A DNA stretch of 33,600 nt from Macrostomum lignano. Lineage: Eukaryota. Shown here in pieces: positions 3,680-31,538 of this stretch. The stretch lies in contig NIVC01001123.1 of assembly GCA_002269645.1 (NCBI GenBank), forward strand, positions 1-33,600, written 5' to 3'. Position numbers and translations under genes: made by a program. The notes below the pieces were generated by a model. That model was not told the origin of the DNA, did no database searches, and saw only the letters and a program-made list of their open reading frames with translations. Within the stretch, counting starts at the first letter, position 1; each line of letters begins with the position of its first letter.

Positions 3680-3889
3680 TACACTAGTGCTTATTGAAAA
3701 AATCTGGCCTTCTGGCAGAATTTTTTCCATATCTCGATGGTCTGGAGGGCGCTGGCGACAAGAATTTCATCCATGTTCTTGCATTTTGTGTGCCTGCGTT
3801 GTAAGTTCTGGTACCAGCTACAAATCGTACCTTTCATACCTAGGTGTATTATTTCAAAACTGCTGTTAATATTTCAGACAACAACGGTT

Positions 3890-8805: not shown

Positions 8806-9464
8806 CTTCTTGTGTCGTGACTCAGTGCTGTGTCTCCAGAATGTTCGTTTAACCAGTTTATTTTCCGCTGGGAAAGATCTTGAAGAAGAAGAAGCCAGTC
8901 TTGTCCTTAAATGTTCTGGTGCAGCTAAATGTTTTTAAAAGGTATTAATTCTGTTACAGTGCTACTTTTATTAAGTAGTGCAACCACCGTGCTGATAATC
9001 TAGTAATCTGCATGCTTATTGATAAACTGTGGGTCATAAGGCATTTTCTATTCTCCATATATTTGGAGACAATTTTTTTTCCAAATAATTGCATTGTGTA
9101 ATATTTTTGCAACTTGTAACGCTGTCTGACTCTTACAAAAATTACGAATAGAAATAATACAAATAACTTTGACTATAATTGCTATGTGTATTTTATTATA
9201 AATCTGTAGTTCAACATTCTTTGTGTTTTTATTTTGTTTATTCAAATTCTAAGTGCTTAGTGTCATAGATGTCTTTGGGGTTCCTTTTAGCTACTTGCAG
9301 TAGTGTTGATAGTTTTGTTTTCAGCAGAAAAATTCAGTGAAACCTCCACAGTTTTATCCTCGGGGCAGTAAAATATCAGAAATCGAAGCCAGGTTTTTCT
9401 ATCACGTTATTTTTATTAACATCGCAGACCCTTCTACTAACAGTAGTGCTGTCGCCAAATTTAG

Positions 9465-9866
9465 ATTTTCAGCAGACTAATTTCAAGCGTTAGTAGCGGC
9501 GGCGGCGGCGCTGCTCGGTTTGCCCAGCTACTATCGGTCAGCAGCAGTCGCTCCTTTGCCACCAGTTCCAAGCCGAATCAGAGTTCGCCAGAACTGCCAG
9601 CAGTGCTAACAATGTATACTCGGCCGGGTTGCACTCTGTGCGAAGATGCGGTTGAAGAGGTTCAACATTTGATCGACGCTGGTCGGATTGTACTGCGTCG
9701 GGTTGACATCGACTTGCCAGAGAATGAGCGGTATCAGGTGTGGCGCTACGATATACCCGTGTTTAAAATTCGCGGCCTGCCAACTATGATGCATCAATTA
9801 GACTTGGACGCTTTGACCCGGCATTTGAATCAGTTGGAGCTTGCGGAGAGGAGCAAAACTGATTAA
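9465..9866 (+). CDS. Glutaredoxin-like protein (C5orf63/DUF836/YDR286C family) with a probable mitochondrial transit peptide; start codon not in this exon unless internal M9612 is used
   Basis: VLTMYTRPGCTLCEDA (CxxC), RRVDIDLPEN, RYDIPVF and MMHQLD match the C5orf63 family pattern. The frame is open from 9465 (after TAG/acceptor 9462-9464) to TAA 9864-9866. Confidence 0.88.
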   Translation: MFSRLISSVSSGGGGAARFAQLLSVSSSRSFATSSKPNQSSPELPAVLTMYTRPGCTLCEDAVEEVQHLIDAGRIVLRRVDIDLPENERYQVWRYDIPVFKIRGLPTMMHQLDLDALTRHLNQLELAERSKTD

Positions 9867-10465: not shown

Positions 10466-11274
10466 GTATTCATTCATGCAGCCTTTGACTCCTATTGTGC
10501 TAGTCAGTTATTCCAGCCCTTTACTGTCAAGTATGAACAGGTGAAAGTGCAGGACAGACGAAGGACAGTCCAAGTGTATTAATTGTACTTTTGTTTTAGT
10601 GCACAATGCTTATTGGCTACTCGAAATTGCCTTCTTTATCTGTCAGTGTCAAATTCTTTAAATTCGAAGTGCTAAGCTACAAAACAAAATTACATTTAAC
10701 GTCACCTTATTGAACATTTTTCTACTGTATATGCATATTTGTGTCTTAACACTCAGATTCGAGCAATATAATTATCAGTTTCTGCCGTTACGTTCAACAA
10801 CTTCTCTCCGCTTGGTAATGCTTTTCTATATTGTTTGATTTACTCTCTGAGTCTCCGTACCTCACAATATCTCTCTCTCCCTCTCCCCCTCTCTCTTTCT
10901 CTCAGTTTTGTTCTCAGTATGCAAGAGCCAAACTGCAGCAAACTAACATTTATGCCCTAGGACATACCTCAATTTTTGTACACTGCTCTCATTTCCAAGA
11001 AAACTCCGTGACTGAGAATGACATTGTGTTGTACTTGCTGAATACGCGTCTGAAATTTTTTTTACGCAGATAGCCTAGTTCAAGTACACAGTCTGTAGAG
11101 CTGCTGTGGGTCTGTTTCCTGTTACGGATGTACTTGCGCTCCTATGTACACGCGCTCTGTGTATATATGTTTCATATCGAGAGACCGCCGCAGCTTTTAT
11201 TATTGAATAGTAGCCGTGAAAAATGGCCATCGGCAAGCAGTGAAATATTTAAAAAAAGCTTTATCTATTTGAAA

Positions 11275-11683
11275 ATGTTTAATAAAAGTGGCGATGAAAA
11301 CAATAATGATGATGAAGATTTCCACGCCGAATCGCCGAGTCAGCTTCGTCCTCGGAGGCGGCGGCCTCGGCCGCATTGTACATTGATTGGCTCGAATCGG
11401 TGCTGCGATCGCATCGACAGATGGTTGCTGAGCCAGTTGGACTCGGCTTACCTGCCAGATCTAGTCTGGCTGGACAGGGCTAGCGGCCTGTTTCGCATCG
11501 ATTGGCATCGGCGGCAGTGTGACAGGCGGCGGCTGCGGCCGGCTGACTGCGGAGGACACGGCTGTGGAACTGCTGCTGCCGCTGCTGCTGAGGACTGCGG
11601 CAGCGGCCGTGGTAGCGTATTCACTGCCTGGCACCGGTATCGAGGTGACTGCCTGTCTGTCCGTCTGGCTGTCTGCCTGTCTC

Positions 11684-11729
<46 letters not shown>

Positions 11730-11855
11730 CCTCTGTCTGTCTGTCCGTGTGTCTATCTGTCCGTCTGTCTTTCTATCTGTCTGTCTGTCTGTCTTAGTGT
11801 CTGTCTGTCTGTCTGTGTGACTCTGTCTGTCTGTCTGTCTGTCTGTCTGTGTGAC

Positions 11856-11886
<31 letters not shown>

Positions 11887-12617
11887 TAGTGTCTGTCTGT
11901 CTGCCCCTTTTCTTATATGCCTGTCTGCACTGCCTATCTGTCTGTCCCGTTAGTTAGTCTGTCTGTCGTGCCTTTGCGCATCTGTCTGTTTGTTAGTATG
12001 TATATCATCATATCTCTTATTCTATCTTTGTCTTGTAATACCTTGCAGTTTTGTCTAATACATTCAATTTCCTTATCAATCGATTAATAGGTAAAAATAC
12101 TTTGCTAAGCGGACTCCAGCAGAGTAGTTCCGTATCAATTTTATATATTGTACTAAAGTACATTTATAACTTCAGCATATCTGTAGCACATTGTTGCCCT
12201 CTTACTAAATTCGCAGGCCGCGACAGCCCGGCTGAATGGCGCCGACTTAAACAAAATTTTCGCTGCGCCCTAAACGGCAGCCGGCGCTATCTGCGCTATC
12301 GGCGCGACCTAAGCCGGCGCGGGGGCGCCAACGCCTACCGAGTCTACCAGTTCGTTGCTAACGACGCCAACAGTCGCGTCGCCGTTTTGTCTACGCCAGC
12401 TACTAGTGTTGCTAGCACCCCCACAGATGCCAGCTTTGACATTGCGGCCAATGAAAACTATGACCAATTCGATTGTAAACCCGTTGCCAAGCATACTGTT
12501 GACATTGACAACGAAATTATCATTGATTGGCTGATCGACAAGTCGCCGCTGGTGTCCAGCATTGATCCGTGCATGCATTCCAGCGGCAGCGCCTTGGCTG
12601 GCTTGCTGCAATCCTGA
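11275..12617 (+). CDS. IRF: Interferon regulatory factor family transcription factor (IRF DNA-binding domain, no recognisable IAD), ~256 aa
   Basis: join(11275..11644,12217..12617), phase-1 GT-AG intron. All five IRF tryptophans are present: [27 protein letters not shown]. These are followed by the recognition helix [11 protein letters not shown] and the YRVYQF strand. The start codon could be further upstream. Confidence 0.88.
11650..11990. repeat. (TGTC)n compound microsatellite in the IRF intron
   Basis: Directly visible; begins immediately after the donor at 11645. Confidence 0.95.
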
Positions 12618-13408: not shown

Positions 13409-13692
13409 ACCACTGCTACGCTCAAAGATCCTTAATAGCTTTGCTACCCTCCTAGATCCGTAGGCTACCTTGGTACCCTCAAAAATCCTCATTTTATGGC
13501 ATCCCATATCTTCAATTTGAGTGTCCAAATCCCTAAATTCTACCCTTTGTGTCGCTATCCCAGATTCCTAATACAGGAGAGGCAGAACGGATATCCTGTA
13601 CAGTTGCCCCAACAATAAATATGCCAGATTTAGTACATTTTTGCCAGCTAAAGCCCATAGCGTCGCGCTAATTTCATGTCAGTCCTAACAAA

Positions 13693-16600
13693 ATGGTAAA
13701 TGGACCGCCGTCAGTCGCCATCATGCAACAGCATCAGCAGCAGACTCCGCCATCAAGCGGCATTGCTATTGGCAGCTGCGGAATCGCCGCTACCCCGTCG
13801 GCCGCAGCGTCCGGCGTTGCAGCGTCCGGCGCGCCAGGCGGCGACCTGATCGAGGAGGGCCTGCAATTCCTGGAGCCGTTCGTCCAATCGGAGCGCAGCT
13901 ACCCGGATCTGGCCACCCTGCTAGGCGGCGTGGGCGATCGGGTGACCATGAGCGGCACCGACGTGGCGGCCTATCCGCCTAGTCCGAATGGCTCAGGCGG
14001 CGAAGTGTCGATCTCGCGCGTCACTCCGCTGCCAGGCGAACTAATGGAGAAACTGGGCGCTATGCAGACCAACTGCCTCATGGGCGTGTTCCCGGAGGCT
14101 AGCCGGGCCTGGCTGACTGTTGATAACGAATTCTTCTTGTGGAACTACGAGGACGGCAGCGATTTAGCTTATTATGACGGGCTTCAAGACGCTATTGTTG
14201 CTGTTGGATTTGTACAGCCTAGGCGAGATGTGTTTGCAGACGAGGTGCACCATCTGTTGTGCCTGGCTACGCCTTTAGAATTAGCTGTGCTAGGCGTTAG
14301 TTATCAGTCTGGCCAGGTGCACCTGCTGGCCGAACCGCTGTTGCGCCTGCCAACTGATGGACAGGTTGTCACCTGTATTGAAGGCAGCCGATCGACTGGC
14401 CGGCTGTTCGCTGGCACCCAGTCTGGCTGCCTGCTCGAGGTGGCGTATGAGGAGCGCCGAGTTGGATGGCTTAGCGGCCAGTACACGGTGGGTGGGGGAT
14501 CTGGGTGTGGAAAATATAGAGGTGTTAAATGATAAGACACAATATACAGAGTTACTTAACTAACTGACTGACTGACTGACTGACTGACTGACTGACTGAC
14601 TGACTGACTGACTGACTGACTGACTGACTGACTGACTGACTGACTGACTGACTGACTGACTGACTGACTGACTGACTGACTGACTGACTGACTGACTGAC
14701 TGACTGACTGACTGACTGACTGACTGACTGACTGACTGACTGACTGACTGACTGACTGACTGACTGACTGACTGACTGACTGACTGACTGACTGACTGAC
14801 TGACTGACTGACTGACTGACTGACTGACTGACTGACTGACTGACTGACTGACTGACTGACTGACTGACTGACTGACTGACTGACTGACTGACTGACTGAC
14901 TGACTGACTGACTGACTGACTGACTGACTGACTGACTGACTGACTGACTGACTGACTGACTGACTGACTGACTGACTGACTGACTGACTGACTGACTGAC
15001 TGACTGACTGACTGACTGACTGACTGACTGACTGACTGACTGACTGACTGACTGACTGACTGACTGACTGACTGACTGACTGACTGACTGACTTAAAAAC
15101 TAAAAACTAACTTGATAGTATTGCTACTTAAAGCAGTACATAAGTACATTAAAGATAATTGTTACACTCGCATCTTTTCAGGTACAGGGCCGCTTAATCA
15201 ATCACAGCGTGTCCAGCCTCTCCCGCCTAGTGCCCAGCTTCATCAGTAGTTTAGCGGCAGCCGACGATCCAATATGCCAGGTGTGCGTAGACGACAGCAG
15301 ACGATTAGTGTACACCAGATCGCAGGAGTCGACCGTGTTTGCCTATGCCTTGTCTGCCGAGGCTGGCGATACGGCGGCCAGGCGGGTGGCGGCCTTGCGC
15401 GGCTCAGACCTGGCCGCTCATGCTGCCCGCATTGCTCACATGGTCGATCGCAGCTGTCTAACCGATATTGTACACCTGTCGCCGCTGACTGCTCAGCATT
15501 CCGCTATGCTCTATCTTATGGCCGTCACCGGGTCCGGGGTTCGATTCTATTTCGATGCTCGCCTACGCCTGGCTCACGTTCGGCTAGGCCCGATGTGTCC
15601 GAGTCTGCCTAGGCTGGCCGATATTCGGCTGGCCACGGAGAGCCGCGGTACGGTCCTGATGCTGGCCAGTCGAGGGGAGGATCGGGACACACTCTATGTG
15701 CTCAGTCCGGACCCGTTTCCTAGGAGACCGCAGCTGCAGGTGCGCCTGGGGCTTTTCTATGTACTATTGCGTTTCATTGCGTGTACTTTTATGGTTTCAG
15801 AGTGTACTTTATGTGCTTCAGTGTAGCGCCAGTCCAGCCACTTACCAATGCTTCAGTGTAGCGCCAGTCTCTAGTATCCATTGTACTGTATGCTTCAGTA
15901 TAGCGCCAGTCCAGCCACTTTCCAATGCTTCAGTGTGGCGCCAGTCCAGCCACTTTCCAATGCTTCAGTGTGTCGCCAGTCTTACTTACCAATGCTTCAG
16001 TGTGGCGCCAGTCCAGCCACTTTCCAATGCTTCAGTGTGGCGCCAGTCCAGCCACTTACTAATGCTTCAGTGTGGCGCCAGTCCAGCCACTTACCAATGC
16101 TTCAGTGTGGCGCCAGTCCAGCCACTCTCCAATGTTTCAGTGTGACGCCAGTCTTACTTACCAATGCTTCAGTGTGACGCCAATCCAACGGCACTGTATT
16201 TCAGATGGGTTCCACCTAATTAGCCGTACACACTTTAACTTAATTAACTTAGCCATGCAATAGTAAATTAAATATTCTCCTTCATTTTCCCTCTTTATTC
16301 AGGAGGCCTGCAGCGTGGCCTGGCCCCCTGGCCGTGCCTGGATCATGTGCTGCCTGCCCAGCCCGCAGCTGGATTATCGGGACATCGGCATCGATCCCCA
16401 GCTGCACGACGGTCCCCTAGTTGGCAGGCCGTATCCTCCTGTGTTTCTGACTCAACACGTTGATCCGGTCAGGCGGTTTCTATTAGTATCAGTGCACGGC
16501 CTTGTGCTGCTGGAATTGCAGACTCCGCTAATGCGTCTGGCCGGTTTGTTAGCGGCCAATCAGCCGGATTCTCGTCCGGTGACAGATTGGTTTGCCCACT

Positions 16601-19521
16601 TTGGCCCCGAGGAGAGCAGCTGCGTCTGTCTGATCCTAGCCTGCTGCGATAGCGACGATCTAGTTAGGGAGAGAGCGCTGGCCGCCGTCATGCTGCATGG
16701 CACTGCCGCGGCTGTTAGAGATGGTTGGTACTTTTATTTTGAGTCTCCTCAGTTGCTGGGCCAGCCTCCCAGATCCTCAGTTGCTGGGCCAGCCTCCCAG
16801 ATCCTCAGTTGCTGGGCTAGCCTCCCAGATCCTCAGTTGCTGGGCCATCCTCCCAGATCCTCAGTTGCTAGGCCACTATCCCAGATCCTCACCAGCTGCC
16901 CGCATCCTCAGTTGCTGGGCCACCACCACCCTCCCAGATCCTCACCTGCTGCCCAGATCATCAGTTGCTGAGCCAGCCTCCCAGATACTCAGTTGCTAAG
17001 CTAGCCCTCCCAGATCCTCAGTTGCTGGGCCAGCCTCCCAGATCCTCAGTTGCTAGGCCAGCCTCCCAGATCCTCAGTTGCTGGGCCAGCCTCCCAGATC
17101 CTCAGTTGCTGGGCCAGCCTCCCAGATCCTCAGTTGCTGAGCCACCTGCCAGTCCCCAGATCCTCAGTTGCTAGGCCAGCCTCCCAGATCCTCAGTTGCT
17201 GGGCCAGCCTCCCAGATCCTCAGTTGCTGGTCCAGCCTCCCAGATCCTCAGTTGCTAGGCCAGCCTCCCGCATCCTCAGTTGCTGGGCCACCACCACCCT
17301 CACAGATCCTCAGTTGCTGGGCCAACCTCCCAGATCCTCAGTTGCTGGGCCAGCCTCCCAGATCCTCAGTTGCTAGGCCAGCCTCCCAGATCCTCAGTTG
17401 CTGGGCCAGCCTCCCAGATCCTCAGTTGCTGGTCCAGCCTCCCAGATCCTCAGTTGCTAGGCCAGCCTCCCGCATCCTCAGTTGCTGGGCCACCACCACC
17501 CTCACAGATCCTCAGTTGCTAGGCCAGCCTCCCAGATCCTCAGTTGCTGGGCCAGCCTCCCAGATCCTCAGTTGCTGAGCCACCTGCCAGCCTCCCAGAT
17601 CCTCAGTTGCTGGGCCAGCCTCCCAGATCCTCAGTTGCTGGGCCAGCCTCCCAGATCCTCAGTTGCTGGGCCAGCCTCCCAGATCCTCAGTTGCTGAGCC
17701 ACCTGCCAGCCTCCCAGATCCTCAGTTGCTAGGTCAGCCTCCCAGATCCTCAGTTGCTGGGCCAGCCTCCCAGATCCTCAGTTGCTAGGCCAGCCTCCCA
17801 GATCCTCAGTTGCTAGGCCAGCCTCCCGCATCCTCAGTTGCTAGACCAGCCTCCCAGATCCTCAGTTGCTGGGCCACCACCACCCTCACAAATCCTCAGT
17901 TGCTGGGCCACCACCACCCTCACAAATCCTCAGTTGCTGGGCCACCACCACCCTCACAGATCTTTATTTCTGTAGGCAACCCATTCTGGCCCATCGGCAG
18001 TTTATAAATACATGAAATGCCATCAAATTTCAAGCATAATTAATTTACACCATCTTCGCACCCATCGCAGCCGCCATGGCCGCCTCAATCGATTGCCAGA
18101 CGCCGGTTCCATCAAGCGCCGCGGCAGCCGACCCGTCGGCCAATGCCCTGCTGTCCGGCCTGTCCCGCTACGCCGCCAGAGTCCTGCTGCCTCTCTGGTA
18201 CAGCCCGATCGTGTCTGAACGGCGCGGCTGCTTCTTAGTCAGCCGATTAGAATCCGACGAGCTTGGCTGGTTCTCGTCTCATCTGACTCACCTGTTCAGA
18301 TTTGTGCAATCCAATCTAGCCCAGCTAAGCGCTTCGGCTAGGGGCCGCGTTGAAGCTGAGAGTCAACAGCGGGCCTACAAATTGTTGCAATTGATTTCTA
18401 CTAATTTGGAACTGTTGAACCTGTGGAAACTGCTGGCTGAGCATCAGTTCTATCTTGTGGCCAGGTTTGTACTGATTCAAATTGCACATTACCCCTTGTG
18501 TACTTTATACTGCACATTACCCCTTGTTCCATACTTTATACTACCCATTACCCCTTGTCCCATACTTATACTGCACATTACCCCTTGTTCCATACTTTAT
18601 ACTGCACATTACCCTTTGTCCCATACTTTATACTGCCCATTACCCCTTGTTCCATACTTTATACTGCACATTACCCCTTGTCCCATACTTTATACTGCAC
18701 ATTACCCCTTGTTCCATACTTTATACTGCACATTACCCCTTGTCCCATACTTTATACTGCACATTACCCCTTGTTCCATACTTTATACTGCACATTACCC
18801 CTTGTCCCATACTTTATACTGCACATTACCCCTTGTTCCATACTTTATACTGCACATTACCCTTTGTCCCATACTTTATACTGCACATTACCCCTTGTCC
18901 CATACTTTATACTCCACATTACCCCTTGTTCCATACTTTATACTGCACATTACCCTTTGTCCCATACTTTATACTGCACATTACCCCTTGTTCCATACTT
19001 TATACTGCACATTACCCATTGTGTCCCATGCTCTGCACTATTGTCACAGAAATTTCAAGCCTCAAGAACCTCCCCGACCACAATCGATTGTTTTACAGAC
19101 GCCTGACAGAAGACGAGCGCGCACACCTTCGTGGAACGCGGTTTCGAGACCTACTTCTGGCTAAGAATCGCCTACTGCTCAATCGTTTAATCGCCTGTCT
19201 GCTTGAGCACTACCTGGCCGACAGCGCCAGCGTTGACAGCATCTCTAACAAGCTGCAGGAGGCCTGCTCATCGCTCTATACTCCGCAGGATGCCCTGTGT
19301 GCCAAGGCTAACGAAATGCTGCAAGCGGCTGCCGGCGAGCCGCTCGACCGTCGGACCAGCCTGTTGGCCGAGGCCGGCCGGCTGTACAGGGAGGCCGGCA
19401 CCTCCGTCAGCCTGGCCGATGTGCTGCCCCGGCTAGAGGCTCTGCAGGCCTACGAGACTATGGCCGGATTGTGCCTGGCCTTGGCCAAGCAGTGGGATCC
19501 TCAGGTGCGCGTCTGTGTGTG

Positions 19522-19580
<59 letters not shown>

Positions 19581-21123
19581 GTCAGTCAGTCCGCCCGCTT
19601 CGCATTAGCATTCCTACCCTTGCCGCCCCGCCCACCAGGATCGCGCTCTGCACTTCACACGCGAAGGCCGGAAGCCGCACACGGAGGCGGACGCAGACGC
19701 GGTCGCCGGCCGACACGGCTGCTACCAGGCCCTGCTGGACATTTGCACCCGTCTGCGTCGTGCAGCCACCGGAGCTGGCGCTGCAACCGTGCCGGTGGCC
19801 GTGACGCCCCGACCAGTCGGCGTAAGTCCGCACTCCTCAGCGGCAGCCGCGGCAGCAGCAGCTGCAGCCGCCGTTGTCTCGCAATCGCCGGCCAAAGCGC
19901 AGCAGGGTCAGCACGAGATGGCCAGAGTGTTGGACAATGTTATCCGGGTGAGCCACTTTAAAGTACATTTGCTTCTTTTTAAGCTAATCAGTATGTGGCT
20001 GTGCCAGCGTGCGTCAAGTCTGTTATCTGCTGTATAGACTCCTTAGTACGGGGCGGGCGTAGCCTTTCGCTCTGATGTGCCAGCGGCCCAGGCTCGATTC
20101 CCAGTGCAATTCACATTAATTTGGGTCTAAATTGGAATCTTGGCTTGGCTCTGCTCGTGCAATTAACGCCCTGGATAGCCAACCCCCAAGGTACAGTGAA
20201 GTGTACATTCCTAACGATAAATAAAGTTAGGGCCGCTGTACACTCTTGTGACTACGTACATATCTGCGCGCTTGTGTGCCTGCTCAAGGGAGTCGGCGGA
20301 ATGGGTAGTAATGCCTTCTCGCCGGTTGTGCGACACAGCCGCCTTGCCTCTTGTATTGAAAGTTATTTTTTAGAATGCTTTCATCTCCATGGTAACAGGT
20401 GACGCTAAACTCAGACGACATGCTGGCCCACTACGAGATGTTCAACTGGCTGAGCCAACACGGCATGACCGAGCAGATGCTTAGTCACGATTCGGCTCAT
20501 TTAGAATCCTACCTGCGCAATAGGCTGCGCAAAACGCCCGAAGATCAACAGTTGCGCGAATTGCTCTGCCGGCATTTGAAACGCTGCGGCAAAGTTCTAG
20601 AGGCGGCTAGAATACTCGAACACCTGGCCGTGGCAGCCTGCGACACCGCTGATCTGGCCCAGCGTCAGGCCTACCTGGCTCAGGCCATTGTCGACGCCAA
20701 GAGTCGACCGGGCGAAGGCATTGGCGAATTGCTTCAACAGTTGGAGGACGAGTTGGACACCGCCACGGTGCAAGCGGCCGTGCTAGAGGAGCTGCAGCAG
20801 CGGTATCCGCAGTCGGCTGCCTCGCCCGAGATGGCCGAAGCTGTGCGCCGGCTCAACGGTCAGCTGTTTCCCCTCACGGAGCTCTATGCAGAGTTCGCCG
20901 CTCCGCTGCGCCTGCCGCTGGCCAAACTGAGAATTGTGGCCTCGGCGGGGCACCGGGACCAGGCGCTGGTCAATCAGCTGTGGGAGGAACTGCTGGACAG
21001 GGAGCTGGCCGGACCGGCCGGCTTCAGGGCTGTGCAGCAGACTCTGGCCAGGTGTGTCTGAGCGGGAGCATTGTCCCCAGCGATTTTTCTGGAAGAGTTA
21101 AATAAACAGGTAGACTTGCAAAC

Positions 21124-21206
<83 letters not shown>

Positions 21207-21229
21207 CTAAGACACTAAGACAGACACTA

Positions 21230-21262
<33 letters not shown>

Positions 21263-23355
21263 CTAAGACAGACACTAAGACAGACAGACAGACACTAAGA
21301 CAGACACTAAGACAGACACTAAGACACTAAGACAGACAGACACTAAGACACTAAGACAGACAGACAGACACTAAGACAGACAGACAGACACTAAGACAGA
21401 CACTAAGACAGACAGACAGACACTAAGACAGCCAGACAGACACTAAGACAGCTTATGCAGCTATGCAACCAAAGTGCCGCTGGGGTATTTTTTTTAAATA
21501 AACCGCATTCAATCGCCCAAGCGCCCGTTGCTCTCCATGCCGCAGGCTCGGCCGATCCTATTCCAGCGGTGCCAATGGCGAAGACTTTTTCCCAGCCGTA
21601 CAGATTGTAGCCACACTGGAGAAGCGCGCTATAGAAGCCCGCCTAGAGGAGGGCTGGGTTGTCAACGCGTTCTGCCAGTTCGATTATCCGCTGCACCGTC
21701 TGGCTCAGGCCTACGATCAGCTGCTACGGCGCCGGGCCGGCGATCCGGTCTGGCAGAGTCTGCGAGGCTATCATCAACTATTGCGCAGCCTCATCTGCCT
21801 GCTTGCCAAATTCCAGCGGGCCGCCGATTCCATGCCAGCTAGGAATCGGTGAGTTAATGAGCAGATATTGCGTGTGTTCTGCCCCTTTTCAGTTATACTG
21901 CATGAGCCACTATCAAATTCTATGTTGTTCTTAATGTGAGTTCTCTACTACCTCTGCTATTTCCTCTCCAGCTTCTCATTCTATTCTTCATATCTTCATC
22001 TTTCTAGAATCTTTCCTTCCCTTCCACCTTTTACTTCTCCCGTGTCTTCTTCTTTCTGCCTCCGTCTCTCTGTCGCCCTCTCTGTCGCCATCCCTGTCGC
22101 CCTCTCTGTCGCCATCCCTGTCGCCCTCTCCCTGTCGCCATCCCTGTCGCCCTCTCTCTGTCGCCATCCCTGTCGCCCTCTCTCTGTCGCCATCCCTGTC
22201 GCCCTCTCTCTGTCGCCATCCCTGTCGCCCTCTCTCTGTCGCCATCCCTGTCGCCCTCTCCCTGTCGCCATCCCTGTCGCCCTCTCTCTGTCGCCATCCC
22301 TGTCGCCCTCTCTCTGTCGCCATCACTGTCGCCCTCTCTCTGTTGCCATCCCTGTCTTCCTCTCCGTGTTTTTCTCTATCCTCGCCCTCTCTCTGTTGCC
22401 ATCCCTGTCTTCCTCTCCGTGTTTTTCTCTATCCTCGCCCTCTCCCTGCCTCTTTCTCCTTGTCTTCCACTCCCCTGGCATTGGCTCTCTTCCTCTCATC
22501 TGCCACTCCTTCATGTCCGCACCTTGCTCCTTTTTTCTGTTTCATTTTCATTCTCCAAACCAACCTTGTACCTATCCTTTCCCTCCTTCCTCGAGTCAAT
22601 TTTGTTTCGTATCGCTTTTTCAGCGCTTCAGAAATGTTCTCCATCTACATCTATTATAATTCAATCATCTCCATCTACATCTATTATAATTCAATCATTT
22701 CCATCTACATGATCTATTATAATTCAATCATTTCCATCTACATCTATAATAATTCAATCATTTCCATCTACATCTATAATAATTCAATCATTTCCATCTA
22801 CATCTATTATAATTCAATCATCTCCATCTACATCTATAATAATTCAATCATTTCCATCTACATCTATTATAATTCAATCATCTCCATCTACATCTATAAT
22901 AATTCAATCATTTCCATCTACATCTATAATAATTCAATCATTTCCATCTACATCTATTATAATTCAATCATCTCCATCTACATCTATTATAATTCAATCA
23001 TCTTCATCTACATCTATTATAATTCATTCATCTCCATCTACATCTATTATAATTCAATCATCTCCATCTACATCTATTATAATTCAATCATCTCCATCTA
23101 CATCTATTATAATTCAATCATCTCCATCTACATCTATTATAATTCAATCATCTCCATCTACATCTATTATAATTCAATCATTTCCCCGCCCCAACAACCC
23201 ATCGAATTTAAATTTGCAGTCAACGCGCGGCCTCCCAGTTCCTGGACATGATCTCATCTTATCAGGTGGACTTGCGCAGCCACACGGACGCGATGTCGGT
23301 GAACATCAGCCAGCGGCTGGCTCAGATCAGAGACGATTTGGCTAGGATGGCCTGA
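13693..23355 (+). CDS. NUP155: Nuclear pore complex protein Nup155 (Nup170/157 family), ~1324 aa
   Basis: join(13693..14487,15182..15739,16303..16723,18071..18464,19099..19504,19639..19947,20399..21051,21546..21848,23220..23355) = 3975 nt, GT-AG and phase-consistent. Motifs: [120 protein letters not shown]. The exon 1 donor and exon 3/4 junction are less certain than the rest. Confidence 0.95.
14563..15093. repeat. Perfect (ACTG)n microsatellite, ~132 copies, NUP155 intron 1
   Basis: 531 bp with no visible interruption. Confidence 0.98.
15812..16180. repeat. 35-bp minisatellite (CAATGCTTCAGTGTGGCGCCAGTCCAGCCACTTAC) with shorter variants, NUP155 intron 2
   Basis: Tandem periodicity, ~10 copies. 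Confidence 0.93.
16746..17960. repeat. 28-bp minisatellite (CCAGCCTCCCAGATCCTCAGTTGCTGGG), ~40 copies, NUP155 intron 3
   Basis: Tandem periodicity with CACCACCAC variant units and higher-order duplication. Confidence 0.96.
18483..19020. repeat. 31-bp minisatellite (TACTGCACATTACCCCTTGTTCCATACTTTA), ~17 copies, NUP155 intron 4
   Basis: Period 31 is visible directly. Confidence 0.96.
19511..19582. repeat. (TGTC)n microsatellite, NUP155 intron 5
   Basis: Directly visible. Confidence 0.93.
20050..20105 (+). mobile_element. Degenerate tRNA-derived (tRNA-Glu-like) sequence, possible SINE head, NUP155 intron 6
   Basis: CGCTCT...GCC-GCGGCCCAGGCTCGATTCCC (20068-20102) resembles the anticodon-to-T-arm half of eukaryotic tRNA-Glu, with a B-box carrying one substitution. 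No intact cloverleaf. Confidence 0.4.
21125..21450. repeat. (GACA)n compound microsatellite with CACTAA interruptions, NUP155 intron 7
   Basis: Reverse complement of the TGTC/TTAGTG family at 8331-8805. Confidence 0.95.
22063..22440. repeat. 24-26-bp pyrimidine-rich minisatellite (CCTGTCGCCCTCTCTCTGTCGCCATC), NUP155 intron 8
   Basis: Tandem periodicity, followed by a ~50-bp tandem duplication. Confidence 0.92.
22641..23183. repeat. 30-bp AT-rich minisatellite (CATCTATTATAATTCAATCATCTCCATCTA), ~18 copies, NUP155 intron 8
   Basis: Period 30; gives the [10 protein letters not shown] artefact ORF. Confidence 0.96.
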
Positions 23356-23945
23356 CCCAAGTCCAGGAGCAAGACGGCCGGTCTTAATGAACTTATTTTT
23401 CATACAAGAAATGTATTGCATTTGAATTGCTGCCTGCTGTTGCAGAGGTTTGGTGAACATGCTTACAGTTACCCAGTGTTATTTCATGCTAGTTAGTTTT
23501 AAATTATTTAATAGCCATCAAATTAATTGCCCCTCATTCAATTCAATCGAGGTGTCTAACCTATGTGCCATTGCGGGTGTTGATCGTGTTAAAAATTGCT
23601 TATATATTTATATGTTATTTTATTATTATCTGCGGTACACCTCAGCTCGCCTTTTTGTTGTGTGTTACAATATTATAATAATAATAACCAAATTTAAATT
23701 CCCACTTTTCATGTAAGTGCGTTTGTTTTTTAATTATATTTTTAACAGCGTTGATTCTACTTGAAAAACAACACAATAAACACATTTTGCATTCGACGTG
23801 AACAATCAAATTCACATTGTGAAGAAGAATTGAAAAATTAACGCTTTACTTATAAAAAATATTGCTAGTTGCATTTTCTTAAATCATATAACAGCAGCGC
23901 GTGTATGCGAAACTGCTCATAGTAGCAATATATGTATCTGTAGGC

Positions 23946-24604
23946 GCATCTGTGCCTCAGTGCCACTTTCCATCCAGGCGCATCTGTGCCTCAGTGCCAC
24001 TTTCCATCCAGGTGCATCTGTGCCTCAGTGCCACTTTCCATCCAGGTGCATCTGTGCCTCAGTGCCACTTTCCATCCAGGTGCATCTGTGCCTCAGTGCC
24101 ACTTTCCATCCAGGTGCATCTGTGCCTCAGTGCCACTTTCCATCCAGGTACATCTGTGCCTCAGTGCCACTTTCCATCCAGGTGCATCTGTGCCTCAGTG
24201 CCACTTTCCATCCAGGTGCATCTGTGCCTCAGTGCCACTTTCCATCCAGGTGCATCTGTGCCTCAGTGCCACTTTCCATCAGGTACATCTGTGCCTCAGT
24301 GCCACTTTTCATCCAGGTGCATCTGTGCCTCAGTGCCACTTTCCATCAGGTACATCTGTGCCTCAGTGCCACTTTCCATCAGGTACATCTGTGCCTCAGT
24401 GCCACTTTCCATCAGGTACATCTGTGCCTCAGTGCCACTTTCCATCAGGTACATCTGTGCTTCAGTGCCACTTTTCATCCAGGTGCATCTGTGCCTCAGT
24501 GCACTTTCCATCAGGTACATCTGTGCCTCAGTGCCACTTTCCATCAGGTACATCTGTGCTTCAGTGCCACTTTCCATCCAGGTGCATCTGTGCCTCAGTG
24601 CCAC
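23946..24604. repeat. 34/33-bp minisatellite (GCATCTGTGCCTCAGTGCCACTTTCCATCCAGGT), ~20 copies, between NUP155 and SUMF1
   Basis: Tandem periodicity; 34-bp units on the left, 33-bp variant units on the right. Confidence 0.96.
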
Positions 24605-24887
24605 TTATCGGGTAGAATCACAGATACTAAAATAACTAGATGGGCCACTCAGGCATATATGCGTAGTAAAACAGCTTTCTACTTTCAGTTCAGTAGCAAA
24701 GAAGAATACATAAGCTATTTTTTTTTCCTCACTGGCACTAATTTCTCATTTCTGTTGGCATGACAGTTTACTGTTAAATCTGTCAGATTATCGAACAAAT
24801 AATCACAGCGTGTTGATTAGCCAACTGATTTCTTGAATAAGACCGACCGAAGCCCGTTCAGTAAAAGCAACAAAAATCTGCTTTCAG

Positions 24888-26719
24888 GCTACCCAAATAT
24901 TAATCGGTTTTGTTGCCATGGTAACACCGTTGACCGGCCTGGTTGGCGCTGACTGCGGCTGCGCACTCGGCCCTCGCGTGCGTCTGTCTGTCCCGCAGTT
25001 TCCGCCAGCATCGATGCCTGGGCCTCGCCGTCGATTGAAAACGATCGCCTCGTCGGATTTAGCGTCGCCATGGCAACCGTCCCAGCCGGGCAGTACACGG
25101 TCGGCACCGATTCGCCTCAGCTGCCTTCCGACGGGGAATCGCCGGCCCGCCTGGTCCGCTTCCGGCGGCCCTTCCGGTTGGACACCGCTGCCGTGACTCG
25201 CGGCCAATTTGCCCAGTTTGTCCGGGCTACCGGACACCGGACGGACGCCGAGACGGCCGGCGAGTCCTTCGTCCCGGACATCCTGGTCGACGCCGAGACG
25301 TTCAGCGATCCGGTCGTCGTGCCCGGGCGGGTGGCCAACGCGCCCTGGTGGCTGCCGGTGCGCGGAGCCACCTGGCGCCGGCCGGCCGGTCCGGCGAGTC
25401 GAAAGTCGCCGCTGGAGTCGTCGAGTGGGTGCTGCCGGGCTCGTGCCCTAACAGAGAGTTGGGATCTGTCACCTGGAGATGGGATTTCACAAATGAAGTT
25501 GAGATCACAGATCAATTTGGGATCTCACAGATCAATTTGGGATCTCACAGATCAATTTGGGATCTCACAGATCAATTTAGGATCTCACAGATCAACTTGG
25601 GATCTCACAGATCAATTTGGGATCTCACAGATCAATTTGGGATCTCACAGATCAATTTGGGATCTCACAGATCAACTTGGGATCTCACAGATCAACTTTG
25701 GATCTCACAGATCAACTTGGGATCTCACAGATCAACTTGGGATCTCACAGATCAACTTGGGATCTCACAGATCAACTTGGGATCTCACAGATCAACTTGG
25801 GATCTTGCAGTAGCTTGAGTTGGGACTTTAGGATATAGTAGCTCAAGTTACAAGCTACAGAATCCCTATCCTTCCCACTGTCGCAGACTCCCGATTCCGT
25901 CATCCCGCTGTCCACGTCAGCTGGCGAGACGCCGACGCCTACTGCCGCTGGCAGGGGAAGCGGCTGCCCACCGAGGACGAATGGGAGGCGGCCTGCCGGG
26001 CCGGCCTGTCCGACCGCCTGTTCCCGTGGGGCAACGCGCCGAGGCCGGGCGGCCGGCACCGCATGAACATCTGGCAGGGCGAGTTTCCCAGGCTGAACAC
26101 CGCTGACGACGGCTATGTTGGCACCGCGCCGGTAATTCATCAGCATCAATCATCATCATCACCTGGCATTTATTCTGTCAGATACAAGTTTAATTTTCTT
26201 TACACTCTACTTATATTGTCTGTTAGGAGCAAACAGTGCTTTAAAAAAATTTCGCATGAAAAATTTCATCAGTACGAGTATATAAAGCGACTGTTTTGTA
26301 CTACTGGTACTGCTGTTCTCTCCCCCCTCTCCCTCGTTCTTTTGTGCGGACCTAAATATGAACAGCTAGCTTAGCTAACACGAAAGGTTGAAAGCGCTGT
26401 GCAGCGTACGTTCAGGCCTTCTCTCTACTCTATTCACAGTACAGTGCAGTTGGGCTGTCGTGCAGATAAGAGAAGGATAGACTGGGCAGGTAAGTGGGGG
26501 GAGCCTGGCCAAATAACGTTTCTGCAATTCTGCTGCAAATAACGACGAACAAGCTGTTAGAGCACTTTGATTGGCGCTTATATATGATAGGTTCTAAGCC
26601 TGAGTTTAAAATGAATCTCAATAACTGATTAATCCGGCCTGTGAATCGGCTGATAATGTAAACTTTACTCAGTCTAGCATCGGGTACTTTATTAGTCTCT
26701 ATGTCTGTCTGTCTGTCTG

Positions 26720-26792
<73 letters not shown>

Positions 26793-26839
26793 GTCTGTCT
26801 GTCTGTTTGTCTGTCTGCCTGTCTGTCTGTCTGTCTGCC

Positions 26840-26911
<72 letters not shown>

Positions 26912-26917
26912 CCTGTT

Positions 26918-27012
<95 letters not shown>

Positions 27013-27417
27013 GATCCATCCCCCAATTCGCCATCGTAGGTGGACGCGTACGGGCCGCAGAACTCCTTCGGTCTGTACAACATGGTTGGTAACGTGTGGG
27101 AATGGACGGCCAGCCGCTGGGACCGCAACGGCGCACCCGATGAGCTGCCGCAGCGGCCAGCGGCCAGTGATGAGATGACAAAAAAGGGCGGCTCCTTCAT
27201 GTGCCACAAGGTGAGAGTCGACATTTGTACTTTAACTGAAGCTTAGACGGACCAAGTCGAGTGCTGTCCCGTGTATGTTTAAACCTACCTCTTCTATTAC
27301 CGCCCGCAGAGCTACTGCTATCGCTACAGGTGCGCGGCAAGGTCGCAGAACACGGCCGATACTTCCAGCGCTAATATTGGCTTCCGCTGCGCCATCGATG
27401 TGGCTAATTCAGACTGA
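24888..27417 (+). CDS. SUMF1: Formylglycine-generating enzyme (sulfatase-modifying factor 1); 5' end frame-discordant
   Basis: N-terminal frame from 24888: signal-peptide-like [21 protein letters not shown] followed by DCGC. Core frame 25070..25424: [39 protein letters not shown] (donor GTGGGT at 25425; alternative at 25398). Then 25887..26131 ([31 protein letters not shown]), 27040..27210 ([22 protein letters not shown]) and 27310..27417 ([20 protein letters not shown]). The catalytic Cys pair is intact, so this is SUMF1 rather than SUMF2. Confidence 0.93.
24912..24925. promoter_or_regulatory. RFX X-box-like motif GTTGCCATGGTAAC
   Basis: Matches the X-box consensus GTHNYYATRRNAAC but overlaps coding sequence. 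Confidence 0.3.
25064..25077. promoter_or_regulatory. RFX X-box-like motif GTCGCCATGGCAAC
   Basis: Matches the X-box consensus but overlaps coding sequence. Confidence 0.25.
25501..25805. repeat. 20-bp minisatellite (GATCTCACAGATCAA(C/T)TTGG), ~15 copies, SUMF1 intron
   Basis: Period 20 is visible. Confidence 0.96.
26702..27012. repeat. (TGTC)n microsatellite, SUMF1 intron
   Basis: Directly visible. Confidence 0.95.
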
Positions 27418-27451: not shown

Positions 27452-28295
27452 TCCCTGATCCCTGAGCCTGCCGCTCCAGATCCTCTCTCTCTGGCACTTC
27501 CTGAACCCTGAGCCTGCCGCTCCAGATCCTCTCTCTCTCTCTCTCTCTCTCTGGGACTTCCTGAACCCTGAGCCTGCCGCTCCAGATCCTCTCTCTCTGG
27601 GACTTCCTGATCCCTGAGCCTGCCGCTCCAGATCCTCTCTCTCTCTCTCTGGGACTTCCTGAACCCTGAGCCTGCCGCTCCAGATCCTCTCTCTCTGGGA
27701 CTTCCTGATCCCTGAGCCTGCCGCTCCAGATCCTCTCTCTCTCTCTCTCTGGGACTTCCTGAACCCTGAGCCTGCCGCTCCAGATCCTCTCTCTCTCTCT
27801 CTGGGACTTCCTGAACCCTGAGCCTGCCGCTCCAGATCCCCTCTCTCTGGCACTCCCTGAACCCTGAGCCTGCCGCTCCAGATCCTCTCTCTCTCTGGGA
27901 CTCCCTGAACCCTGAGCCTGCCGCTCCAGATCCCCTCTCTCTCTGGGACTCCCTGAACCCTGAGCCTGCCGCTCCAGATCCCCTCTCTCTGGCACTCCCT
28001 GAACCCTGAGCCTGCCGCTCCAGATCCCCTCTCTCTGGCACTCCCTGAACCCTGAGCCTGCCGCTCCAGATCCTCTCTCTCTGGCACTTCCTGATCCCTG
28101 AGCCTGCCGCTCCAGATCCCCTCTCTCTGGCACTTCCTGAACCCTGAGCCTGCCGCTCCAGATCCTCTCTCTCTGGCACTTCCTGATCCCTGAGCCTGCC
28201 GCTCCAGATCCCCTCTCTCTGGCACTCCCTGAGCCCTGAGCCTGCCGCTCCAGATCCCCTCCCCGGGACTCCCTGAACCCTAAGCCTGGCGCTCC
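27452..28295. repeat. ~46-bp minisatellite with an internal variable (CT)n tract, ~18 copies, just 3' of SUMF1
   Basis: Unit CCTGAGCCTGCCGCTCCAGATCC(CT)nGG(G/C)ACT(T/C)CCTGA(A/T)C. Confidence 0.95.
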
Positions 28296-28654
28296 AGATC
28301 TCCGTTGATTATCCAATAGTCATCACAAAGAAAACTGAAGTTAAGCAATTGATTAAAAATGGAAAAAATATTGAAGCTGAACAATTTTTTTAGATGCATA
28401 ATATATTTTAATGATCTGTCTGATTCTATTTTAGCCTATTAATATTTAAATGTGTCAATTTTTACAGTTCGTAAATTTAAATATATTGATTTTTAATGGT
28501 GCTAATTGGTATTTTCTTATCTATTTCTTTATTCTAACTGTTACTCGTTTGTGTTATTTATTGATTGAACATTTGCGTTTGCTGATATGAATTTTCTATG
28601 CAAGTGTTGGGTTCTCTCGCTACCTTATCGTTTTTTTTTCTAGAAACTCTTGGA

Positions 28655-30487
28655 CAGGGGTCGGCAAACTCCGCCTAGCGGGTCACGGCCACATGCGGCC
28701 CGCGAAGCCTCTCTATCCGGCCCTCATGTCCGTGAAACTCAATGTTTCTGTCTCTTCTCAGCGCTCTTCTCTAATCTCCTCTTCTCTTTTATCTCCCTCA
28801 CCTCCTCTCTCTCTCTTCCTCTCCTCTCTCCTCCTCTCTCTCCTCTCTCCTCTCTCCTCTCCCTTCTCTCCCTCCTCTCTCTCCTCTCTCCTCTCTCCTC
28901 TCCCTTCTCTCCCTCCTCTCTCTCCTCTCTCCTCCTCTCCCTCCTCTCCTCTCTCTCCTCTCTCTCCTCTCTCTCCTCTCTCCTCCTCTCCCTCTCCTCC
29001 TCCTCTCTCCCTCCCCTCTCTCTCTCTCTCTCTCCTCTCTCTCCTCTCTCCTCTCCCTCCTCTCTCCTCCTCTCTCCTCCTCCTCTCCCTCCTCTCTCCT
29101 CTCTCTCCTCTCTCTCTCTCTCTCTCTCCTCTCTCCTCCTCTCCCTCCTCTCTCCTCTCCCTCCTCTCCCTCCTCTCTCCTCCTCTCCCTCCTCTCCCTC
29201 CTCTCCCTCCTCTCCTCCTCTCTCTCCTCTCTCTCCTCTCTCCTCCTCTCCCTCCTCTCCTCCTCTCTCCTCTCTCTCCTCCTCTCCCTCCTCTCCTCCT
29301 CTCTCTCTCTCTCCTCTCTCTCTCCTCCTCTCCTCCTCTCTCCTCCTCTCTCCTCCTCTCCCTCCTCTCCCTCCTCTCTCTCCTCTCTCTCCTCTCTCTC
29401 TCCTCTCCCTCCTCTCCCTCCTCTCTCCTCCTCTCCCTCCTCTCCCTCCTCTCTCTCCTCTCTCTCCTCTCTCCTCTCCTCCTCTCTCCTCCTCTCTCCT
29501 CCTCTCCCTCCTCTCCCTCCTCTCTCTCCTCTCTCTCTCTCCTCTCCCTCCTCTCCCTCCTCTCTCCTCCTCTCCCTCCTCTCCCTCCTCTCTCCTCCTC
29601 TCTCCTCCTCTCTCCTCTCCTCCTCTCTCCTCTCTCTCCTCTCTCTCCTCTCTCCTCCTCTCCTCCTCTCCTCTCCTCCTCTCCCTCCTCTCTCCTCTCT
29701 CTCCTCCTCTCTCCTTCTCTCTCCTCTCCCTCCTCTCTCCTCCTCTCTCCTCTCCTCCTCTCCCTCCTCTCTCCTCTCCCTCCTCTCCCTCCTCTCCCTC
29801 CTCTCTCTCCTCTCTCTCCTCTCTCCTCCTCTCCCTCCTCTCCCTCCTCTCCCTCCTCTCTCCTCCTCTCCCTCCTCTCCTCCTCTCTCCTCTCTCTCCT
29901 CTCTCTCCTCCTCTCCTCCTCTCTCCTCCTCTCTCCTCCTCTCCCTCCTCTCCCTCCTCTCTCTCCTCTCTCTCCTCTCTCTCTCCTCTCCCTCCTCTCC
30001 CTCCTCTCTCCTCCTCCCTCCTCTCCCTCCTCTCTCTCTCCTCTCTCTCCTCTCCTCTCTCCTCTCTCCTCCTCTCTCCTCCTCTCCCTCCTCTCCCTCC
30101 TCTCTCTCCTCTCTCTCTCTCCTCTCCCTCCTCTCCCTCCTCTCTCCTCCTCTCCCTCCTCTCCCTCCTCTCTCCTCCTCTCTCCTCCTCTCTCCTCTCC
30201 TCCTCTCTCCTCTCTCTCCTCTCTCTCCTCTCTCCTCCTCTCCCTCCTCTCTCCTCTCCTCCTCTCCCTCCTCTCTCCTCTCTCTCCTCCTCTCTCCTTC
30301 TCTCTCCTCTTCTCCTCTCTCTCCTCTCTCTCCTCTCTCCTCCTCTCCCTCCTCTCTCCTCCTCTCCCTCTCTCCCTCCTCTCCCTCTCTCTCTCCTCCT
30401 CTCTCCTCCTCTCTCCTCTCTCTCCTCTCTCTCCTCTCTCTCTCCCTCCTCCTCTCCCTCCTCTCTCTCTCCTCTCTCTCCTCTCTC

Positions 30488-30521
<34 letters not shown>

Positions 30522-31538
30522 CTCCCTCCTCCTCTCTCCTCTCTCTCCTCCTCTCCCTCCTCTCCCTCCTCTCTCTCCTCTCTCCTCTCCCTCCTCTCTC
30601 TCTCTCTCTCTCCTCTCTCCTCCTCTCCCTCTCTCCCCTCTCCCTCTCTCCCTCCTCTCTCTCTCCTCCTCTCCTCTCTCCCTCCTCTCTCCTCTCTCTT
30701 CTCTCCTCCTCTCTCTCCCTCTCTCCTCTCTCCTCCTCTCCCTCCTCTCCCTCCTCTCCCTCGTCTCTTTCCTCTCCCTCCTCTCCCTCCTCTCTCTCCT
30801 CTCCTCCTCTCCCTCCTCTCTCCTCCTCTCCTCCCTCCTCTCCCTCGTCTCTCCTCTCCCTCTCTCCTCCTCTCTCTCCTCTCCTCCTCTCCTCCTCTCC
30901 CCTCTCTTTCTCTCTCCTCTCTCTCCCCTCTCCTCCTCTCTCTCCTCTCCCTCCTCTCTCCTCTCTCTCCTCCTCTCTCTCCTCTCTCCCTCTCTCTCCT
31001 CCCTCCTCTCCTCCTCTCCCTCCTCTCTCCTCCTCTCTCTCCCTCTCTCCCTCCTCTCTCCTCCTCTCCTCCTCTCCTCTCTCCTCCTCTCCCTCCTCTC
31101 TCCTCCTCTCTCCTCTCCTCTCTCTCCTCCTCTCCCTCTCCCTCTCTCTCCTCTCCCTCCTCTCTCCTCCTCTCCCTCCTCTCTCTCCTCTCTCTCCTCT
31201 CCCTCCTCTCTCCTCTCCCTCCTCTCTCCTCCTCTCCCTCCTCTCTCCTCCTCTCCCTCCTCTCCCTCCTCTCTCCTCTCCCTCCTCTCTCCTCCTCTCC
31301 TCCTCTCCCTCCTCTCTCTCCTCCTCTCTCTCTCTCCTCCTCTCTCCTCTCTCTCCTCTCTCCCATCTCTCTCCTCTCTCTCCTTTCCTCTCTGCTCTCT
31401 TCTCTCTTTTCCCTCGCCTCACCTTTGTTGTCATAGTTCCCTTCTCTCTTTTCCATCTCCTCTCTCCCCTCCTCTGGCCGCAGTCATGCTCTCGGTTTTC
31501 TTTCTAGCCATTGAGGTAAAAAGGTTTGCCGAGCCCTG
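28655..31538. mobile_element. Non-autonomous hAT (Charlie-type) element whose interior is a polypyrimidine tract
   Basis: 15-bp TIRs CAGGGGTCGGCAAAC (28655-28669) and GTTTGCCGAGCCCTG (31524-31538), 14/15 complementary. Charlie-like subterminal GGCCACATGCGGCCC at 28687-28701. The 8-bp flanks CTCTTGGA / CTCTAAGA (6/8 identical) resemble the NTCTAGAN target. Confidence 0.8.
28780..31475. repeat. ~2.7-kb low-complexity polypyrimidine (CTC/CTCT/CTCTC) tract
   Basis: Between 28801 and 31364 I see only two purines (G at 30763 and 30847). Confidence 0.98.

Follow-up and report, generated by a model that had tools for sequence, protein, structure and literature searches.

A signal-peptide exon without its own start codon in the SUMF1 gene of Macrostomum lignano, and the spliced-leader AUG as a plausible source of the initiator methionine

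We analyzed a stretch of 33,600 nucleotides from the flatworm Macrostomum lignano (assembly GCA_002269645.1, contig NIVC01001123.1, positions 1 to 33,600 of the forward strand; hereafter the window), which carries on its + strand a gene for the formylglycine-generating enzyme (FGE), SUMF1. The exon that encodes the signal peptide of this enzyme begins directly at a splice acceptor of the trans-splice type and is preceded by no ATG in its frame. The spliced leader (SL) of M. lignano ends in ATG and would place a methionine exactly in frame at this position. We consider initiation of the SUMF1 signal peptide at the SL AUG moderately probable, somewhat better than an even chance. In the assembled copy, the signal peptide and the enzyme domain are separated by a one-base frame break.

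The start of the gene is defined by the following features.

24881-24887, + strand: 3′ splice acceptor CTTTCAG, read directly and proposed as the SL trans-splice site; the exon starts at 24888
24834-24836, + strand: in-frame TGA that closes the signal-peptide frame upstream, with no ATG between it and 24888
24888-24950, + strand: signal-peptide codons 2-22, without the initiator codon, read directly as GCT ACC CAA ATA TTA...
24918-24920, + strand: internal ATG of the signal-peptide frame, with gccATGg as its context and no other in-frame ATG near the start
24951-24977, + strand: DCGCALGPR, the N-terminal CGC motif of FGE, assigned by comparison with 14 animal FGEs and by simulation

The codons of the signal peptide start at positions divisible by 3 (frame 0), and this frame reads ATQILIG... 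from 24888, exactly where each of the six public M. lignano gene models of SUMF1 has either an exon boundary or the start of its protein. The signal peptide was assessed by hydrophobicity and the -3/-1 rule. The full peptide contains an 18-residue uncharged run with a mean Kyte-Doolittle value of 2.06, and its V-G-A agrees with the -3/-1 cleavage rule. A start at 24918 leaves an uncharged run of 11 residues with a mean of 1.45. The same start would put 11 residues ahead of the CGC motif, compared to at least 19 in all 14 orthologues. Direct reading thus bears out what an earlier, sequence-only reading had described here, namely the acceptor CTTTCAG followed by an in-frame signal peptide, a frame closed by the TGA at 24834 with no ATG thereafter and a V-G-A cleavage site; the hydrophobicity values agree with its statement that the internal ATG would halve the hydrophobic core.

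Human SUMF1 has a signal peptide for the endoplasmic reticulum (ER) and an N-terminal extension with Cys50 and Cys52. Among the 14 animal FGEs inspected, the signal peptide is directly followed by [D/S/G]CGC in 13 and by CSC in one (Strigamia), and mostly an R or K occurs within seven residues past the motif. In three arthropod FGEs the motif occupies residues 20-22, directly past the cleavage site; here it would be at residue 24. The distance from CGC to the conserved DGE is 50-81 residues in most of the 14 proteins and 56 in M. lignano after frame repair. BLAST on the CGC/N-terminal region gave a weak match (E 0.39), the match being very short. Of 20,000 composition-matched simulated sequences of 233 nt, 3 contained a hydrophobic 15-residue window ending six or fewer residues from C[GS]C. 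The proposal that this is the CGC motif conserved in the FGE N-terminal extension therefore stands. Because CGC is kept across FGEs, and because a hydrophobic 15-mer this close to C[GS]C is rare by simulation, this FGE, judged by its sequence, truly begins with this peptide, which comes without a start codon of its own. The observation appears to be real and far beyond chance.

M. lignano has a single 35-nt SL, CGGTCTCTTACTGCGAAGACTCAATTTATTGCATG, which ends in ATG (PMC8629364). Between 30 and 39% of its genes are trans-spliced (PMC8629364, PMC5730564), and the motif enriched at its trans-splice acceptors is [T/C]TNCAG (PMC8629364). TTTCAG at 24882-24887 matches this motif, and a junction SL...AUG/GCU ACC at 24887/24888 is in frame with the signal peptide. 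Use of the 3′-terminal AUG of an SL as initiator methionine is established in flatworms, according to the account of Cheng et al. (2006) given in PMC9851317 and PMC12582326. In the mechanism that we propose, codon 2 of an ER signal peptide would open the exon, immediately after an acceptor of the trans-splice type, and the initiator methionine, absent from the locus, would be supplied by the 3′-terminal AUG of the 35-nt SL. Trans-splicing of the SL at 24887/24888 would then give methionine plus signal peptide, followed by DCGC.... The mechanism would concern the intact form of the gene and not the frame-broken assembled copy. The acceptor motif, the in-frame geometry and the lack of a local ATG can be read from the DNA itself, and we infer SL addition at 24888 and use of the SL AUG. 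The predicted SL junction sequences are ...TTTATTGCATG/GCTACCCAAATA or TTTATTGCATG/GCTACCCAAATATTAATC, and the unspliced form is TCTGCTTTCAG/GCTACC.

The public models P0002 and P0004 (two of six) have no initial methionine and open exactly with ATQILIG, as expected from transcript alignment after SL clipping. The SL-AUG interpretation is plausible and agrees with the published biology of M. lignano. The earlier claim that the SL AUG gives a methionine in frame survives in part: the SL ends in ATG, the acceptor motif fits and the junction is in frame with the signal peptide, but in the window the FGE domain is read in a frame other than that of the open reading frame (ORF) opened in this way. 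The last 10 nt of the SL have no exact copy in the window, which thus holds no SL RNA gene.

Several points weigh against SL-AUG initiation. The ATQ starts of the ML2 models P0002 and P0004 bear on SL addition only indirectly. In four of the six public models, the acceptor at 24888 receives an in-frame exon with an ATG by cis-splicing, and flatworm acceptors are often common to cis- and trans-splicing (PMC12582326). Chance alone would put an SL AUG in frame in every third trans-spliced gene. In the assembled copy, the ORF opened by the SL AUG ends at 103 codons, before the FGE domain, and for this particular copy the interpretation is weakened by the frame break.

The remainder of the gene was reconstructed as a spliced model from 25070 to 27417, with four exons and a predicted protein of 292 residues.

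25070-25424, + strand: SUMF1 exon 1, the FGE-domain part, located by Pfam and by tblastn with Xenopus and Adelges FGE; donor TCGA/GTGGGT
25887-26131, + strand: SUMF1 exon 2, from the spliced model and tblastn
27040-27210, + strand: SUMF1 exon 3, from the spliced model and tblastn
27310-27417, + strand: SUMF1 exon 4, from the spliced model and tblastn, with the catalytic CYRYRC and the stop TGA at 27415-27417

The protein matches Pfam PF03781 (FGE-sulfatase) over profile positions 5-254 of 255 (hmmscan E 4.2e-73). In human FGE, the catalytic cysteine pair is Cys336/Cys341, in a CxxxxC arrangement. The corresponding CYRYRC segment lies at the start of exon 4 (27310-27351) and is the same motif as in the orthologues. 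The closest database relatives are four M. lignano proteins in UniRef, named "FGE-sulfatase domain-containing" (72-82% identity), and these are followed by vertebrate and arthropod FGEs (49-56% identity). The M. lignano entries equal the translation of the window wherever they are in frame, and their mismatches are frameshifted stretches. Such stretches fit an origin in the ML2 assembly, which is error-rich, with 31.9% error-free bases versus 64% in Mlig_3_7 (PMC5730564). By these similarities, the gene is M. lignano SUMF1, located 3′ of a NUP155-like gene on the same strand.

Between the signal peptide and the enzyme domain, two further features mark the frame break.

24978-25069, + strand: linker with the one-base frame break, in which frame 0 must become frame 2; it is one base short of a continuous ORF
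25194-25196, + strand: TGA that ends the ORF opened by the SL AUG (103 codons); frame 0 is nonsense past the CGC region

The FGE domain is read with codon starts at 2 mod 3 and the signal peptide at 0 mod 3, in the same uninterrupted DNA, so that the two do not form one ORF in the window, a point that had escaped the sequence-only reading. The domain frame is shut by a TGA at 24950-24952, and its first ATG is at 25070 (gccATGg). The window as assembled contains no single ORF from signal peptide to catalytic domain, possibly owing to an assembly error.

We enumerated all GT/GC-AG introns able to restore the frame. All of them are 23-134 nt long and have poor donors, and most would cut into the signal peptide or the CGC motif; the strongest candidate, 24986-25062 (77 nt, GTCTGT...TTTAG), was judged unconvincing. 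The donor at 24978 (GTGCGT) forms a canonical 108-nt intron with the acceptor at 25085, yet only with an extra G would this intron lead into the right frame. Paired with the acceptor at 25093 or 25120, the same donor would delete the conserved first strand, ATVPAGQY. We also noted that an extra G at 24978 would make 24978-25085 removable in frame, which would then reproduce the public model P0004.

Each of the six public models bridges the frame gap differently. A single extra G at 24978 gives P0001 a normal spacing of 56 residues from CGC to DGE. P0122, P0003 and P0121 follow frame 0 for longer and switch at ~25046, ~25127 and ~25118, respectively, while P0004 and P0002 skip 107 and 110 nt, respectively. 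As ML2 is full of indels, these bridges cannot decide between the options for the frame break. An exhaustive HMMER search with the frame-0 ORF returned only further models of the ML2 type (P0121, P0122 and P0004), and the supplements of PMC5730564 and PMC5173321, searched for SUMF1, have no entry for it. Exact-protein look-ups of contigs gave no record.

The accuracy of the assembly was gauged from unbroken Pfam alignments. In the window, ~920 further Pfam-verified codons have no frame break, so that the assembly is generally good. A search for NUP155 orthologues, made for the same purpose, gave a distant trematode fragment and, besides it, only two M. lignano models. The same PacBio reads underlie both ML2 and Mlig_3_7 (PMC5730564), and if the window derives from Mlig_3_7, a systematic GG-to-G consensus error, possible in this case, would be common to the ML2 models. 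With GG, the sequence at 24977-24978 would be CCTCGCGGTGCG; the longer GG and single-G forms are GGCCCTCGCGTGCGTCTG and GGCCCTCGCGGTGCGTCTG, respectively. We hold a consensus error and a truly broken copy to be roughly equally likely, and a short intron that escaped notice to be less likely than either.

The strongest alternative follows from this break. The copy in the window may be a frame-broken paralogue, non-functional or used differently, whose signal peptide plus CGC product of 92-103 residues, regardless of the source of the first AUG, ends at 25194. If so, the FGE domain could start only at the ATG at 25070 and would lack ER targeting. The break is present in the window, and the unbroken ~920 codons indicate that the assembly is not generally sloppy. 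P0003, P0121 and P0122 also remain in frame 0 beyond 24999, and only one-base changes that lie further on and differ among them bring them into the domain frame. Moreover, the genome of M. lignano is neopolyploid and contains redundant copies (PMC8629364). However, the remaining parts of the gene, among them the catalytic CYRYRC, are intact and conserved, and P0001 with its extra G gives a continuous ORF with normal spacing from CGC to the domain; the PacBio reads common to ML2 and Mlig_3_7 leave room for the GG-to-G error. We regard the paralogue explanation as a serious possibility, though short of probable, both for the truncated product and for a domain without ER targeting.

A second alternative takes the methionine from an upstream exon joined by cis-splicing. 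The exon concerned belongs to the neighboring gene.

23220-23356, + strand: NUP155-like terminal coding exon, which holds ATG 23248, ATG 23293 and an internal donor TCG/GTGAAC at 23298/23299

Splicing from the donor at 23298/23299 to 24888 would give MS-ATQILIG... from ATG 23293, or a longer product from ATG 23248. The exon sequence ...CAC ACG GAC GCG ATG TCG/GTGAAC ends in frame with 24888 (junction phase 0/0). P0001, P0003, P0121 and P0122 carry sequence 5′ of ATQ that maps to 23220-23298 and contain this exact junction, and flatworms commonly use one acceptor for both kinds of splicing (PMC12582326). The cis junction sequences would be GACGCGATGTCG/GCTACCCAAATA or CACGGACGCGATGTCG/GCTACCCAAATATT, with the core GATGTCG/GCTACCC. 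Against this, the exon is NUP155 coding sequence. It joins the preceding NUP155-like exons in frame, the Pfam Nucleoporin_C match (profile positions 340-666 of 672) extends into 23220-23356, and the M. lignano NUP155 models P0124 and P0125 end with this exon, reading through to the stop at 23354. The two ATGs therefore lie deep in the NUP155 ORF, and splicing there would yield a NUP155-FGE fusion in which the signal peptide is buried and of no use. ATG 23248 is the start in three of the four models, in the manner of an ab initio "initial exon." The donor matches five of nine consensus positions, compared to six to seven for the real donors of the gene, and the ML2 assembly on which the models rest is rich in errors (PMC5730564).

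Since the exon is NUP155 coding sequence, the four cis-spliced models look chimeric. We read them as probable chimeric annotations or as a read-through by-product, that is, cis-splicing between operon neighbors, and we think it unlikely that this exon provides the initiator of FGE. The sequence-only reading had itself named a cis-spliced upstream exon with an ATG as evidence that would tell against it. Such an exon formally exists, at 23298/24888 in four of the six models, but it is the NUP155 coding exon. The candidate that had been put forward, ATG ACA/GTTTAC at 24760, does not hold up as a cis exon, as its donor at 24766 matches two of nine consensus positions.

It is more doubtful still that SUMF1 has its own promoter and an unrecognized, ATG-bearing 5′ exon in the 1.5-kb spacer or further upstream that is cis-spliced to 24888: although there are 19 in-phase ATG...GT combinations between 23100 and 24880, none is used by any public model and none has a good donor (the best ones match 6/9 and are located in NUP155 coding sequence or 3′ untranslated region, and the donor at 24766 is poor as noted), and much of the spacer is a 34-bp tandem array.

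A stronger version of SL-AUG initiation would make ER targeting of M. lignano FGE strictly SL-dependent. The acceptor at 24888 would act as a switch, with SL addition providing the methionine of the signal peptide and cis-splicing from the NUP155 terminal exon giving a NUP155-FGE fusion or read-through product. Were this general, the supply of an AUG by the SL would amount to a genome-wide gating of signal and transit peptides in flatworms. We consider this stronger version quite improbable.

The gene order on the + strand is a mariner-like remnant, a CDC16/APC6-like gene, a glutaredoxin-like gene (DUF836), a gene with an IRF domain, the NUP155-like gene (13672-23356) and SUMF1. From the stop of the NUP155-like gene (TGA 23354-23356) to the SUMF1 acceptor at 24887, the spacer is 1531 nt long, and much of it is filled by one repeat.

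23942-24606, no strand assigned: tandem repeat of 34 bp x 19.8 (Tandem Repeats Finder), in the NUP155-SUMF1 spacer

Without this 665-nt array, the spacer is 866 nt. Operons of M. lignano have been defined by neighbors on the same strand with a repeat-adjusted intergenic distance below 1 kb (PMC8629364). The NUP155-like/SUMF1 pair, at 866 nt, falls within this published distance, and its arrangement thus fits that of an operon and may be called operon-like.

The sequence-only reading had seen the same arrangement at the glutaredoxin-like gene, which does not hold as it was put. The DUF836 ORF (9465-9863, Pfam E 1.6e-11) has a presequence-like N-terminus and no in-frame ATG before 9612. However, the strong acceptor TTTCAG/C at 9467-9472 places the SL AUG out of frame (AUG CAG ACU AAU UUC AAG CGU UAG, with a stop after six codons). 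The SL AUG is in frame only with a weak TAG acceptor at 9464 or with a hypothetical 68-nt mini-exon at 9325-9392. This putative mini-exon has the acceptor ttgttttcag and the donor CAG/GTTTTT. At the CDC16/APC6-like gene (3872-3892), a TTTCAG acceptor lies 12 nt 5′ of the gene's own ATG at 3890, and an SL AUG there would also be in frame, giving M-TTTV-MSATP....

Other features of the window were noted in passing. The stretch 2614-3632, 5′ of the CDC16-like gene, contains mariner/Tc1-like transposase remnants that match HTH_32 weakly. At 11074-12614, two ORF pieces correspond to profile positions 2-36 and 62-105 of the Pfam IRF DNA-binding domain PF00605. Taken singly, each scores around or under the cut-off, and the pieces suggest an IRF-like gene in a flatworm. 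Introns and spacers are crowded with tandem arrays at 22638-23185 (30-bp x18), 23942-24606 (34-bp x19.8), 25480-25805 (20-bp x16), 26702-27013 (TGTC x80) and 27543-28300 (46-bp x16). Downstream of SUMF1, the + strand has a ~2.56-kb tract of nearly pure pyrimidine (C/T) at 28801-31364, made up of runs of 1962, 83 and 517 nt and broken by two single interruptions.

If confirmed, initiation at the SL AUG would make SUMF1 a clean case, in a free-living flatworm that is amenable to transgenesis, of a conserved ER enzyme that gains its signal peptide only upon SL trans-splicing. It would help to ask whether SL-AUG use favors targeted proteins. There is also a consequence for annotation, as such genes are mis-modelled as 5′-partial or as fused with their upstream neighbor, as in the six public models of SUMF1. 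The frame break in the assembled copy needs to be resolved ahead of functional claims.

The gene resembles eukaryotic FGE/SUMF1, as known from human, in the PF03781 domain, the CYRYRC motif and the order of signal peptide, DCGC, linker of ~56 residues and domain. It differs in that the start codon is not encoded together with the signal peptide and that the linker has a one-base frame break in the assembly. With the operons described in M. lignano (Ustyantsev and Berezikov, 2021, PMC8629364; Wudarski et al., 2017, PMC5730564), the NUP155-like/SUMF1 pair shares the common strand, the repeat-adjusted spacer below 1 kb and the [T/C]TNCAG start, which make it a candidate operon.

The nearest known mechanism is the initiator methionine provided by a flatworm SL AUG (Cheng, Cohen, Ndegwa and Davis, J Biol Chem, 2006, as presented in PMC9851317 and PMC12582326). 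As in that account, the SL ends in AUG, the acceptor abuts an ORF without an ATG, and the AUG is in frame and would be needed for the correct N-terminus. The system so presented is from Schistosoma mansoni and has cDNA and translation evidence, whereas the M. lignano case concerns a signal peptide and an ORF that is broken downstream in this copy. A further parallel is found in slORFs (slORFfinder, PMC9851317), in which the SL also supplies the start codon of the ORF in the recipient mRNA, and which are defined by SL reads and ribosome footprints. Compared with all of these, the SL-AUG start of SUMF1 and the operon formed with the NUP155-like gene are predictions from sequence. SUMF1 would add a new example of SL-AUG initiation, a mechanism known in flatworms since 2006, and would not constitute a new mechanism.

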